A DNA stretch of 64,000 bases from NCBI GenBank assembly GCA_020536535.1, contig JAHLWZ010000291.1, positions 62,001-126,000 on the forward strand, in the 5' to 3' direction. Under the pieces are notes generated by a model that saw nothing but the letters and a program-made list of their open reading frames with translations, was not told the origin of the DNA and searched no databases. The translations under genes were made by a program, and so were the position numbers. Positions within the stretch are counted from its first letter, which is position 1; every line of letters begins with the position of its first letter. The stretch is from Pelomyxa schiedti. Its lineage: Eukaryota > Protista > Evosea. Below are positions 5,657 through 11,508 of the stretch, piece by piece.

Positions 5657-6605
5657 TTACGGTAGCTTCCTTTTCCCTATGAAAGAAATGAGTTCCTTAG
5701 ATGACTTCAACTCGAAATCCAATACATGTTGGTTACGTATTCTGGAAGTGGAATTGATGACATAAAAGGTGCCATTTCTTCCAAAATATCTTGCTGCAAA
5801 AGGAATTGCTCTACAGTGGTCGAACTGGAGTCTTCTGAAGTTTTTTTCGGGGACTAGTCAGAACATAGTTGCATTAAAAAGGACGTACCGGATGACGCAG
5901 CCTCTGAGCTTGCAGGGTCGTGCTTGGCAAAGTCGATATCAGGGTTAGGTTCGGAATCTTCTGCGACAAAATGGCAGCACGCATCGTTGTCGGGATCGAA
6001 GAAGGCAAGATAGCTGACAGCGGCAGAGTTAGACGCGTTGTTGGCATTTGCGCTGCTGGGTGTGTTGTTGGCCGCAACGTTTGTGGAGGGTTGTGTCGAG
6101 TTGGCAATCGCGTTGTTTGCGTTCGCACAAGTTGTAGTATTGGTGGGGGGTGCAGTGTTCGCTGTTAATGGCGCTAATACGCTTGTCGTTGTGTTGGTGT
6201 TGATGTTAGCCACCATCGGCGATGACAACAGCAGAGACGGTGGCGGTTGTGGGGGCGTTGATGATGCTGCAAAGGCCGCACGCAATGAATGCACGTCGTT
6301 GCGAAGCGACGCCATTTCAGTTCGTAGCATGTCGTTCTCCTGCGCTACTCTCATCACTATAGTAGACAAGCGAGAAAATTCTTGCCTCAAGCTTGCCATT
6401 TCCGCAGAAACCTTGTTTTTTAAATATAAATGCAAATGCATTCCAAAGGGGTACATAGTCCTATATTGATACGTACTTGAGCGACGATAGGCGTTTGTTG
6501 TTGCTGCTGTTGCATGTAGTATTGCTGGTACTGTTGGTATTGTTGCTGGTACCTCTGTTGCTGCTGCTGTTGCATCAAGATCTGCTGTTGTTGTTGAGGT
6601 TCCAT
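5657..6605 (-). CDS. polyQ / coiled-coil / low-complexity protein (possibly the 5' exons of the macro-RRM gene)
   Basis: MEPQQQQQILMQQQ..., intron, coiled coil AEMASLRQEFSRLSTIVMRVAQENDMLRTEMASLRND, then a T/N/A-rich region. The 3' end is ambiguous (stop at 5854 if unspliced, 5657 if spliced). Confidence 0.6.
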
Positions 6606-6883
6606 TGTCGTGACTACGGTGTCGTGGCGTGTGTTGGTGCCGGACAAATCGTTTGATTTTTTTTTTTGTCACACAATCAATCTCCACACGATGAGGAGAT
6701 CTTCCAATGCTCCCTGCAGAAGAATTTCTGGAGGAATGTAATGGCGCATTACTACTTGCCGTTGATGGAATGGAATCTGGAGGAGTAACTGGACCAATGT
6801 CTGCCAAGTTGGATAATTCGAAGAAGGCCAAACAGCCTTGCCCGAAGAGCAAATTTTTTTTCTATTAACCTTTTTCTCCACGT

Positions 6884-8594
6884 ATGCGACGTACTCCTGT
6901 AGACGACAACAAAGGCGTAGTGGTGCGCGTTGGACCAACCAACGTAACACCGCCCAATGTAGTTCCGAACAGAAGCACAACAACACCACAAAACCAAATT
7001 TTGCCTCCACCAACAGCAATAACAACGTCGTCGACGCCGCAGCGCCACAGCGCCGCCCGCGCATCACCACCTCCTCCCATAATCCCTGGAACCAACAGCG
7101 GCAGCACAGGCAGCAGCACCGGCAGCAGAACAACAGCGTCCACGGTGGGGAACCCTACGCACCGCCGAAGGCAAAATTACAGCGACTTCCAGCCGGACTC
7201 GGTGTTCGTGGTCTGCACGCAGTGCCAGGCCGCGCCGGTCGCGTCGCCGGCCAAGATCCGCCCGCGCTGCTCGCTCTGCCACGACGCCTCCGTCGTCGTC
7301 GCGCACGACCCGCGGTGCTGGGCCGAGCTGTGCTGCCGCGGCGTCGCGGCGCGCTGCGGCTCGGCCAGGTGCGAGGGCGAGGGGCACCCCGCCGCCGTCG
7401 CCGAGTTCACCGCCCGCTGCGGCCGCGACGTCGACCCGAGCGTCGCCGCCTCGAGCCCCGCGAGGTTCAGGCAGGAGCACGGCGGCGGCAGGAGGACAGT
7501 GTGCAACGCAGCGGCCGCCGTGGTTCAGGCTTTGTTTGACAACTCCATGGCCCCCGGCTATGTGCAAAGGAGGTGTGTGACGTGCAACAGGCCCTCCGAT
7601 GTATGTACTTCCCTCGCTCACCACCACTGGAGTTGCAACGGGGTATATATATATATATATATATAGAGTATAGAGATAAGAGAAAAAGAGTGAAGAATGA
7701 GTGGGGGTACAATAGATTCGGGCACTAAAATTCATTTAGGTCATGCTGTTCTTTCCTGAGCCTTGCACGCATGCGGTATGCCCAGGTTGTTTTGTTTCTA
7801 GCTGGGGTGCGAAGATACGAAGCAAACGATTACCGTGGAACCCTGACAAAAAGATGCATGGAATAAACTGCCCTGGTATCCTTCATAGAGACCCTCCTTT
7901 CACCAACGATTTTTAGTTGGCTGCCCAGTTTTCATTCATGATGCAAGCCTATTGAAACTTTGTGGCGAGAGAGACTACCAACAGTACAGTCACATTCTTT
8001 CTAATGAGATTGCTGTAACTTGCCAAGCTATTTATAGAGACGTGGTATTAATGTCTCAATAGTGCCTTGGCAGCCACGGCATATACTGTTCTACCCTTAG
8101 GTGCTCGTCTGAACCATTCCTGCCCACAAATATTGAGTCGTACAAGGCTTTGTGTACTAAATGCGAGGTACAACAACCAACATTATAACCACAATTTCAC
8201 ACTCCGAAACAGAACCGAACCTGCGTTCGGTGCCTGCAAGAAAGCTCTGCTTGCAGTTGTGTATACACAGTCACGGAAGTATCCATAAAACTGGTACCAT
8301 TTGACAAAACCCCCGGCCTCACTGTGACTGTATGAATACCCCTCCTGGGATTGGTGGCCTCTGGCAATTTAAACGCTAACCTAGGTTAGTCGAGAGGAAA
8401 AAATAGCTGCACTCAAAGCTGTAATACAACACCACTTGGGTCATGAAGCCTCCTCCCAACAACTTTATCTCTTTGGAAAAGAATATCCACCAATACCAGA
8501 CAATGCAATCATACGATCCTTTGCGTTTGAAAACCCCGCTGTAGTACTGTATCTTGAAGTGCTCACCAACCACGCAAACCCTGCTCTGTATTAA
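6884..8594 (+). CDS. Parkin-like protein, RING0-RING1-IBR-Ubl, no RING2
   Basis: Six exons (6884-7600, 7740-7875, 7917-8014, 8063-8167, 8213-8329, 8385-8594) give an open 460-aa frame. RING0 SVFVVCTQC..PAKIRPRCSLC..PRCWAE..AEFTARCG; RING1 CVTC..CTHAVCPGCF..CPVGCP; IBR YCSTLRC..CTKC..CVRC; C-terminal ubiquitin-like domain. Confidence 0.85.
7644..7665. repeat. (TA)11 microsatellite in intron 1 of the Parkin-like gene
   Basis: Directly visible. Confidence 0.9.
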
Positions 8595-8744
8595 GCCTAT
8601 TAATATCACTCCCAATTTGATCCGCCCAACTTGAATCCGAGAGGAATCGTATTTATAGTAACGAATACGAAAATTCGCCACGGCTTGATAAGGCCCACAC
8701 CGCCGATCTTAGAGTTCACAGAAAAAAAAAAACCGAAAAAAACG

Positions 8745-11273
8745 ATGGCATTTCTGTCGCAAATTAATGGTTTTGATAAGGCGAAGCTCAAGGAGACCGA
8801 CACAGTTGTGAGGCATTTCTACGCCATTTGCGCCGACGACCCTGTTCCCAAAACAGGAGCCACTTCGTCATCTGCTACTGTTGCGCATGACGAATCGGCG
8901 GCATCATCGAGTGACAGCAATCCCCTGCCGCCTGTTTCCGATCAGCAACGACAACAAAACTTAGATGTAAATAATCAACAACCGCCGCGGTCATCTGCGG
9001 CACCTGCATCTGGATCTGAGAGCGTGGCTGAGGTGGTGGTGCCAAGGGCTAAACCGCTGGTGGCAACCAGTCCGCCCTCCCATAGTTCAAATCTGGCGAA
9101 GACACTGAAGCGCATATCATTGGAGCCGGGAACGGAAAGGATGTTGTATGGCTTGAGGTCACACGAAGTGGTTCTGGTGGAGGTTTGTAGTTTTCTTTGA
9201 ATGCAAATATTATTGTGGGTGGTTACAATGGAACTGTGGGCAGCATTTCTAAATGAAACAACAGAATTGTGTGAAGAGCAAAATTCTTCTTCGAATGAAC
9301 CAAAGGCTATCCATGATTGTATTCTTGAATTGCGTGTGAGTATCTTTGGTCTACATCCAATGAGTACATTGCCTCACAATACCAAGGAATTGTACTATAA
9401 AATTGTTGGACTCCGCAGTTTTAACATCGAGAACCTGTCGCATCATCAATTGTACAGATTGTGAATTTGCATTTGAAGGTCTTTCGAGCTAACCGCTATT
9501 GTATCGCTCACATATTACAGATATCGATGCCCGTAAAGTAGAGTGTTTTGGCACACAAGGCTGTAGATTTGTATATATTGGTGACACAGTATTGCTGGAA
9601 TCAGAGGTAGCCATTTTCAGAGAAGGTTTCCCTGCTTGTGAAAAATTTTTATCTCGTAACTCCTTTTTTTCAGGGTGCAGACGTAACACCATCGCCACTG
9701 GCGAAATTACTTCACTTGAAGCGATTGACATAGTGTACAAGGTGTGCCAAGTTTATGAGATCAGTACTGTCTAAAATATATTTGTAGACAGAAACTGTGG
9801 AGGAAATTCCTGAAGGAGAGGGACAAGTTTGGCTAAGTACTATAGATACAGCAAGAAATATTCAATTCCATAATTTGATTGATGCTGGAGTGTTCAATAA
9901 GGTAGGAAGTTCCTTCCTAATTAGTAGGTGCCTCACATCTTAAAGCGAAGTCTCTCAATTTTGCAAAAGCTAAGCCCCTTCATCAGTCCGGCCCTCCCTG
10001 GTGACGAGGCTTTCAATGTAATTTCTGCAAGTATTACAACAAGCCAGATTCTTAGCGCCTTGGACACACTGAGCAATGTACCCCAGCACACTCCTGAGGA
10101 AATTTTACAAGCCTATGACTCTGAAAGGTGTGAGTACTATGAACCAGAAGAGTCTCTCCGTAAAAAGGTTCTTTCTCATTCCCTAAAATGGGCAACCTAA
10201 CAGAAAGCAGGCAGCTGAAGTTGGCGAATTGTTGCGTAGTTCCAAGCACACTGTTGTATACACGGGTGCCGGAATCAGCACAAGTACAGGTAACACTACC
10301 TCCTTACTCCCAAATATCTGAAGCCCGTAGGAATCGGGGACTTCCGGGGTCCTCAAGGCTTATGGACTTGCCAAGACAAGGTACTTTTGTGGCGCAATCA
10401 GAATAAGCAGTAACTTCTCTTCAGGGTGTAGCAATGGTAGGAAAAGAAATTACATACAAAGAAGTGCACCCTACTTTTGCCCACTATGCCATCACTGAAC
10501 TGGCAAAGAATAGGCTGGTACAATTCTTATTGACCACCAATGTAGATGGACTCCATGCTCGCAGGTAAGGGCGCCATACCCGCAAGCCCACAATACCAAC
10601 AATTCATGCAGTGACTTTCCAAGACACATTCTCGTGGAGCTCCATGGGTCTTGCTACAAAGAAGTTTGCAGGAATTGCAAGAAGGTGTTCATCAGAGATT
10701 TTGATATCTGGAATGATACAAATGCCTTGTATAGGCAGCATGAAACCGGCCGCCTATGCGATTTTTGCCATGCCCCACTACAGGTACCGTTTTACAGCTA
10801 TATACTCCAACATCTAATAACATGCCCTCGTCAACAGGACACGGGAGTTGCTTTTGGTGAAACGTACCGGGATCCCCTTGACTCGGTGAAGGCCTCGTGG
10901 CACGCCCGCAAATCGACCCTTGGCATCATACTAGGAACCTCCATGAATGTACAGAGTGCCGCCTCCTACCCAGAAAAGGTACTCAAAAAAAAAATTAAAC
11001 AATTACAGAACACGCCACAAACAACACTCACTGAAGCTCCACATGTAGGCACTGAGAAATGGCGGCAAGCTTGTGCTCGTCAACCTCCAAGCGACGCCTT
11101 ACGACTACCTGATGTCGCAGCCCGGCAACATCCGGGTGTGGGCCCGCATCGACGAATTCCTCAAGATGGTCTTGGACTACCTCGGGATATCACCGACCTG
11201 GGCTCCTCAGAGCGGCGCTGACGGCGGCGTGTGTGCCACCCCAACGGCTGGAGCGCCAGATTCCAAGTCTTAG
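8745..11273 (+). CDS. class IV (SIRT6/7-like) sirtuin with N-terminal beta-thymosin/WH2 motif and an unknown middle region
   Basis: VVYTGAGISTS-GIGDFRGPQGLWT, PTFAHYAI, TTNVDGLH, VELHGS, CRNC..CDFC zinc knuckle, LGTSMNV, VNLQATPYD. N-terminus MAFLSQINGFDKAKLKETDT. Middle splice junctions only partly resolved. Confidence 0.85.
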
Positions 11274-11508
11274 GAGATGAGAGGACGAGTTTGGAAGGGA
11301 AAAAGAGGAACAACAAAAAAAAAAGTTGTTTTCTGTGTTGTGAGCTTGATTCCACGGGTTTTACGTAAAAGGAAGCTGTCGGTTGGCCTTTTCGGTTCTT
11401 TTTGGGCGGGTGGAACTCTTCCACGTGTGAGGGTGAACAAAAAGAAAAAAAAAGGGTTCGGCTGTGGATCGTGGATCTCAAGGCTCCTTCCTCCCTTTTG
11501 TTTCGGTT

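Follow-up and report, generated by a model that had tools for sequence, protein, structure and literature searches.

The window, by which we mean the whole 64-kb stretch of DNA that was analysed, carries at 6884-8594 on the plus strand a gene of six exons, Pelo_3794 of Pelomyxa schiedti, which NCBI lists as a 'hypothetical protein' of 460 aa. The exon model corrected with RNA gives a protein identical to the annotated one, and the RING0 part of exon 1, used as a HMMER query, returned the 460-aa Pelo_3794 with 100% identity. The domain order is a low-complexity N-terminus, RING0, RING1, IBR and a ubiquitin-like domain (Ubl), followed by TAA. The gene is divided as follows:

6884-7600 (+): exon 1, codons 1-239; low-complexity N-terminus at 6884-7180, RING0 at about 7205-7426, first Cys pair of RING1 from 7571
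7601-7739 (+): intron 1, 139 nt, GT..AG; from sequence and annotation
7740-7875 (+): exon 2, RING1 core; zf-RING_14 match over residues 230-310; AF2 pLDDT about 90
7876-7916 (+): intron 2, 41 nt, phase 1; from sequence and annotation
7917-8014 (+): exon 3, last zinc pair and helix of RING1, aligned to Parkin 289-320; 3' end set by an RNA joint
8015-8062 (+): intron 3, 48 nt, GT..AG; from an RNA contig of run X1
8063-8167 (+): exon 4, first half of the IBR; from RNA contigs of runs X1 and X2 and the HMMER alignment to the Parkin IBR
8168-8212 (+): intron 4, 45 nt; RNA joint in both runs
8213-8329 (+): exon 5, second half of the IBR to about 8260 and strands beta1-beta2 of the Ubl from about 8276; from RNA contigs and AF2 secondary structure
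8330-8384 (+): intron 5, 55 nt; RNA joint 8329>8385 in both runs
8385-8594 (+): exon 6, coding part; remainder of the Ubl to about 8558, a 10-residue tail and TAA at 8592-8594
8595-8607 (+): start of the 3' UTR; the X1 RNA contig ends at 8607

Three splice joints (8014>8063, 8167>8213 and 8329>8385, all GT..AG) are present in RNA contigs from two single-cell transcriptome runs. This RNA support consists of assembled contigs of one sample, at low depth, and spans positions 7978-8607, which is the 3' half of the gene; exons 1 and 2 lie outside the covered part, and their junctions are based on the annotation and on a zf-RING_14 match that is continuous across them. An 18-nt intron at 8045-8062, proposed by a naive model, is ruled out by the RNA joint that gives the 48-nt intron 3, and the joint 8329>8385 sets the reading frame of the Ubl. 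The X1 contig, from which three introns have been removed, passes unspliced through a GT at 8588 and the TAA and ends 13 nt past the stop; since a spliced RNA runs through it, the stop codon belongs to the processed message. The candidate donor at 8588 (GTATTA, overlapping the stop codon) is not used in the RNA, in which contig ends occur at 8607 and 8559. DNA contigs of two runs, which are probably the assembly's own source, are unbroken over 6300-11400. One base, at 8088 in exon 4, is absent from a single X1 RNA contig (depth 6.2) and present in the genome and in the DNA contigs. Judged from the sequence, its deletion would put exon 4 out of frame, with the protein breaking off within the IBR; either an RT or PCR error in the single-cell RNA or a frameshift allele could account for it. 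Intron 1 contains a (TA)n microsatellite at 7636-7679.

Upstream of Pelo_3794 lies a divergent gene on the minus strand (5854-6606), whose Gln-rich start is separated from the start codon of Pelo_3794 by about 280 nt, and the two genes probably have a common bidirectional promoter region. Because this divergent gene begins near 6606, there is no space for a 5' exon encoding a Ubl. The downstream gene (8746-11273, plus strand) is expressed and encodes a sirtuin, with the motif GAGISTS...DFRGP preceded by a long N-terminal extension; it starts 151 nt past the stop codon of Pelo_3794, in agreement with the distance of about 150 nt to the next gene given in a preliminary description of this DNA. 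RNA joints confirm at least 11 short introns (41-70 nt) of the sirtuin gene. A Cys-rich stretch at 9451-9560 within it weakly resembles the Ubl of the paralogues described below (tblastn E 0.06), which is probably due to chance. The possibility of a RING2 hidden in the downstream gene was considered and ruled out, as its RNA-supported spliced reading is that of a sirtuin with an N-terminal extension.

The relationship of Pelo_3794 to Parkin is seen in profile searches as well as in structural databases. The Parkin-type RING0 and RING1 domains recognised in the preliminary description both score above the Pfam cut-offs: zf-RING_12 (PF17976, Parkin RING0) matches residues 108-181 with 30.4 bits (cut-off 25), and zf-RING_14 (PF17978) matches residues 230-310 with 34 bits (cut-off 26.6). 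Exon 1 alone still gives 29.1 bits with zf-RING_12 against the cut-off of 25, and every PDB match of this exon below E 0.01 is a Parkin chain; exons 2 and 3, which are too short as single queries, gave no Parkin match in the PDB. With the complete protein, all 16 PDB matches below E 1e-5 are Parkin (best 4.6e-10), and the only further match up to E 1 is an antibody light chain (E 0.62). One HMMER alignment to Parkin in the PDB spans RING0, RING1 and IBR in one stretch. By this alignment the region after RING1 corresponds to the Parkin IBR, as in the same earlier claim; Pelo_3794 has no match to the Pfam IBR profile, and the predicted model has a fair pLDDT of 61-67 in this region.

Most zinc ligands are in place. 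RING1 has all eight, RING0 has seven of the eight (C150, C154, C166, C169, C196, C201 and C212, with Asp replacing His215), and in the IBR seven of the eight Parkin-aligned ligands are found, with Ser at the position of His373 and a Cys two residues further, a pattern common to the full-length paralogues. The basic patch of RING0, formed in Parkin by K161, R163 and K211, was described earlier as a retained phospho-Ser pocket. This was confirmed by the HMMER alignment, with Lys and Arg kept and Arg at the position of K211. The phospho-ubiquitin pocket K151/H302/R305 is not conserved, the corresponding residues being Thr, Ser and Lys.

Structure prediction points in the same direction. The top 32 PDB matches of the full-length AF2 model in Foldseek are all Parkin, and the protein-language-model neighbours of Pelo_3794 are animal Parkin clusters (0.92). 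In this model the pLDDT is about 90 for RING1, 72-91 for the Ubl and 26-63 for RING0; residues 1-100 stay under 50, which fits the low-complexity character attributed earlier to the N-terminus. The models are based on very shallow alignments. The RING0 exon-fragment rows, which MAFFT had misplaced, were excluded from the alignment for the full-length model, as a result of which RING0 is poorly modelled and the inter-domain geometry is unreliable.

The C-terminal Ubl is more diverged. The Pfam ubiquitin profile matches it with 16.3 bits (E 0.0085), below the cut-off of 25.4. Nevertheless, the C-terminal 95 residues (366-460) are predicted by AF2, from a six-row alignment, to fold as beta-beta-alpha-beta-alpha-beta with a pLDDT of 68 and a pTM of 0.59. 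In Foldseek, this model gave 253 matches with E <= 0.001, of which the best 50 are ubiquitin, SUMO, ISG15 and other Ubl-fold proteins, and it superimposes on ubiquitin and Ubl structures with an rmsd of about 1.8 A and a TM score, normalised by target, of about 0.8. The beta-grasp fold proposed earlier for the last exon is thus reproduced at the level of a predicted structure. At the Ser65-equivalent, which lies three residues before the His68-equivalent, four paralogues have T, T, T and S, whereas Pelo_3794 has Pro/Ala, and in the Ubl alignment no Ser or Thr occurs near this position of Pelo_3794; the earlier remark that a Ser is missing here was correct.

Pelo_3794 terminates at residue 460, 10 residues past the Ubl, and the absence of a RING2 that had been noticed from the open reading frames was borne out by each search that was made. 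No RING2 was found on either strand of the 64-kb window by tblastn with all open segments downstream of the IBR from two paralogues, and contig C291, to which the window belongs, gave no match in a genome-wide Pfam IBR scan and none in a search with the Cys-rich tail of the family. Splicing of the IBR to a RING2 exon was not seen either, as in the RNA it is the Ubl exon that follows the IBR exons, and the sequence continues unspliced past the stop. Pelo_3794 is therefore without a complete RING1-IBR-RING2 supradomain and without the catalytic cysteine. In RBR ligases, the RING2 cysteine takes over ubiquitin from the E2 and hands it on to the substrate. Since this chemistry needs the RING2 cysteine, Pelo_3794 cannot be a stand-alone RBR ligase, and the gene probably encodes no enzyme, being either a regulator or a copy in decay. 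An annotation as active E3 ligase is inappropriate for Pelo_3794, whether the gene is functional or decaying.

The genome of P. schiedti contains several related genes. Matches to RING0 lie on contigs C291, C804 (copy C804a) and C451; tblastn adds C579 and a second copy on C804 (C804b), which is cut by the contig end, and Pelo_2487 (740 aa) is a sixth Parkin-like member. A three-frame reading of C804a and C451, combined with tblastn matches, gave the same order for at least five paralogues (C804a, C804b, C579, C451 and Pelo_2487): a low-complexity N-terminus, RING0, RING1, IBR, Ubl, linker, RING2 with a Gly-Cys-His-His motif, and a Cys-rich tail. In this comparison the paralogues were treated as exon pieces, and spliced proteins were used for Pelo_3794 and Pelo_2487 only. 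The C-terminus of Pelo_2487, the only paralogue RING2 that was tested in this way, has Parkin RING2 as its best PDB match (E 1.4e-4), with the catalytic Cys aligned. Pelo_3794 thus shares with the full-length paralogues the low-complexity N-terminus, RING0, RING1, the IBR pattern C-x2-C-x6-C-x-C and a Ubl placed directly behind the IBR. It differs from them in that the Ubl is not followed by a linker, a Parkin-like RING2 and a Cys-rich tail, in the loss of Thr/Ser at the Ser65-equivalent, in having the most diverged Ubl, and in a much shorter linker between IBR and Ubl (about five residues, against about 30 in Pelo_2487).

These data change the interpretation of the domain order. In the preliminary description, the Ubl of Pelo_3794 was thought to have been relocated to the C-terminal end, where it replaced RING2. 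This is not the case: the Ubl follows the IBR in every paralogue, ahead of linker, RING2 and tail, and its position is therefore a trait of the family, of which Pelo_3794, the one RING2-less gene among the six, is a 3'-truncated member. We conclude that Pelo_3794 is a real, transcribed and secondarily truncated member of a Pelomyxa Parkin-like RBR family.

Some further features of the RBR genes of this organism were observed along the way. Pelo_2487 has an insert of about 200 residues between RING0 and RING1 (residues about 215-440) with several ZZ-like Cys/His fingers, which may be real or may be due to read-through in the annotation. About 3 kb upstream of the C804a gene (C804:79000-87000), on the opposite strand, there is a weak IBR match (C804:78378-78449, minus strand); together with C804a and the second copy at the contig end, this suggests that RBR genes may be loosely clustered on C804. 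A search with the Cys-rich tail returned six loci in the genome, four of which are Parkin-like paralogues and two ZZ-type RBR genes. The latter, at C973:2500-8600 and C423:35400-42500 (minus strand), encode ZZ-RING1-IBR-RING2 ligases that carry the Cys-rich tail of the Parkin-like family. Since the tail is also present in these ligases, it is common to a wider lineage-specific group of RBR proteins. Both were considered as stand-alone RING2 genes and ruled out as such, because they have their own RING1 and IBR. Outside this set little was found: a search of representative proteins with RING0 (E <= 0.001) returned only Pelo_3794 and Pelo_2487, apart from a single repeat protein that is a spurious match, no relatives emerged when metagenomes were scanned with the RING1 region, and searches for homologous proteins with Pelo_3794, Pelo_2487 and the family alignment returned the query alone, a result that carries little weight with respect to relatives in view of the word and length limits of these searches.

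Sequence divergence within the family is informative about selection on the truncated gene. In RING0 and RING1, Pelo_3794 is 41-66% identical to the paralogues, equal to the level among the paralogues themselves, with exon 2 at 66% identity to C804a. The Ubl is 24-28% identical to those of the paralogues, compared to 30-43% among paralogues. Synonymous sites are saturated (pS 0.70-0.88). For the RING0-RING1-IBR core, pN is 0.38-0.39 between Pelo_3794 and the paralogues and 0.36 between two full-length paralogues; for the Ubl the values are 0.47-0.48 and 0.37, respectively. The saturated synonymous sites together with the pN values of core and Ubl indicate that the paralogues are old, and that in Pelo_3794 the zinc core is no less constrained than elsewhere in the family and the Ubl is looser. 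The frame of 460 codons in six exons is intact. The conservation of the core may predate the truncation of Pelo_3794.

The host, P. schiedti, belongs to the archamoebae, lives anaerobically and has mitochondrion-related organelles of a hydrogenosome-like kind (PMC8887013), so that the reduced mitochondria considered earlier as a possibility, without knowledge of the source of the DNA, are indeed present. The parkin subfamily of RBR ligases has been described as animal-specific (PMC2904391). We found no paper on Parkin-like genes in Amoebozoa, and none are mentioned in the P. schiedti genome paper (PMC8887013). What is of interest is thus a small Parkin-like family with the Ubl inside the protein, in an anaerobe with reduced mitochondria, set against a description of the subfamily as confined to animals (PMC2904391). 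New at Pelo_3794 is a family member that lacks both RING2 and the Ser65-equivalent; it adds a naturally RING2-less member that retains the zinc domains and a putative phospho-Ubl-binding patch.

What such a protein may do can be considered in the light of work on the human enzyme. In human Parkin, phospho-Ubl and RING2 compete for the basic patch of RING0, and the RING2-free R0RB fragment binds phospho-Ubl in trans; natural PRKN isoforms without Ubl or without RING2 are mentioned in the same study (PMC11368401). The explanation that we favour, and to which we give about an even chance, is that Pelo_3794, without catalytic activity, regulates its full-length relatives or serves as their decoy. 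Since it lacks a RING2 that could occupy RING0, the basic patch would be free to capture the phosphorylated Ubl of full-length paralogues, and RING1 may still be able to dock E2~Ub. Pelo_3794 could then be a decoy or a dominant-negative in competition with the active ligases, or a scaffold that bridges them, and it would itself not be switchable, since the phospho-acceptor in its Ubl has been lost. From a patch that is both free and conserved, together with an intact RING1 and a Ubl that cannot be phosphorylated, we infer competition with, or bridging of, the full-length paralogues. The adaptor or decoy role proposed in the preliminary description is likewise compatible with the data. Several observations speak against a regulator: the RING1 phospho-ubiquitin pocket is not retained (K151T, H302S, R305K), the faster Ubl and the missing phospho-acceptor also fit relaxed selection, one RNA contig has the 1-base gap at 8088, and the RNA is thin and confined to the 3' half of the gene. 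A more specific version, in which Pelo_3794 is a dedicated non-catalytic subunit of Parkin-type signalling, in an amoeba whose only mitochondria are hydrogenosome-like, and its RING2-free RING0 captures the phosphorylated Ubl of a full-length paralogue, must be regarded as doubtful. If true, Parkin-like ligases would have a natural brake or scaffold that acts in trans, a mode of regulation that so far has been shown only with engineered fragments of human Parkin.

The main rival explanation is decay. Pelo_3794 could be a partial duplicate or a 3'-deleted paralogue, without function after the loss of the catalytic domain and with a promoter that still drives transcription. It is the sole copy without RING2 among the six, its Ubl evolves faster and has no phospho-acceptor, RING0 has the His215 to Asp change and the phospho-ubiquitin pocket is degenerate; the low RNA depth and the deletion at 8088 fit the same picture. 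However, 460 codons in frame and five GT..AG introns have remained intact even though synonymous sites are saturated with respect to every paralogue, the zinc ligands are kept in RING1 (8/8), RING0 (7/8) and the IBR (7/8, with the one change common to full-length paralogues), non-synonymous divergence of the core is not raised, and the Ubl is still predicted to fold. Furthermore, the 8088 deletion occurs in a single contig of single-cell RNA and is not found in the DNA contigs. We therefore regard a functionless copy as possible but on the unlikely side. If the gene is decaying, it records turnover of the Parkin-like family.

Another possibility is that Pelo_3794 supplies RING0, RING1 and IBR, and that a RING2 from another gene completes the ligase. 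Such an arrangement can be envisaged because the RING2 of Parkin, packed against RING0, forms a separable unit that tolerates untethering (PMC11368401). The genome search for a stand-alone RING2 gene, the separate Rcat that had been postulated as a partner, yielded none, and not one of the six loci found with the tail is a stand-alone Rcat. To our knowledge, no RBR ligase works with an Rcat from another polypeptide. A complex prediction of the Pelo_3794 core with the RING2 and tail of Pelo_2487, run without controls, gave a score of 0.00 and no verdict, and it weighs neither way. Assembly of a ligase in trans thus seems distinctly improbable.

It is hardly credible that the missing RING2 is an artefact, either because RING2 exons were lost by misassembly of a single-cell (MDA) genome or because a RING2 isoform is made via the GT at 8588. 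In favour of an artefact are the origin of the assembly from amplified single cells (PMC8887013), the ends of the RNA contigs at 8607 and 8559 and the donor-like GTATTA that overlaps the stop codon. On the other side, an RNA contig that comes from another sample and has lost three introns reads past 8588 and the TAA, the DNA contigs of two runs are unbroken over 6300-11400, an expressed sirtuin gene follows after 151 nt, and neither the window nor the contig contains RING2-like coding sequence.

Three known systems are of use for comparison. The first is animal Parkin (PRKN), which is the best PDB match both by sequence and by fold and has in common with Pelo_3794 a RING0, a RING1, an IBR that can be aligned by HMMER and the basic patch of RING0, albeit with Arg for K211 in the amoebal protein. 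In Parkin the Ubl is N-terminal, whereas in Pelo_3794 it follows the IBR and the N-terminus is of low complexity. Unlike Parkin, Pelo_3794 is without REP, RING2 and catalytic Cys, has no Ser/Thr at position 65, and carries the replacements K151T, H302S, R305K and His215 to Asp. The Parkin subfamily has been described as animal-specific (PMC2904391), while the host of Pelo_3794 is an anaerobic amoebozoan.

A functional parallel is offered by the accessory subunits HOIL-1L and SHARPIN of LUBAC, which are Ubl-bearing partners that regulate an RBR ligase in trans. They belong to domain families other than that of Pelo_3794, and the comparison is by analogy, with no homology claimed. A structural parallel is found in the engineered Parkin fragment R0RB (141-382) and in the RING2-less isoforms of human PRKN, which like Pelo_3794 consist of RING0, RING1 and IBR without RING2; in R0RB the RING0 patch is free and phospho-Ubl is bound in trans in vitro. 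R0RB is a construct and the PRKN isoforms are splice forms of a full gene, whereas Pelo_3794 is a separate gene with a non-phosphorylatable Ubl of its own. If it is functional, Pelo_3794 would be a natural counterpart of the R0RB fragments and could show how ligases of the Parkin type are regulated in trans.
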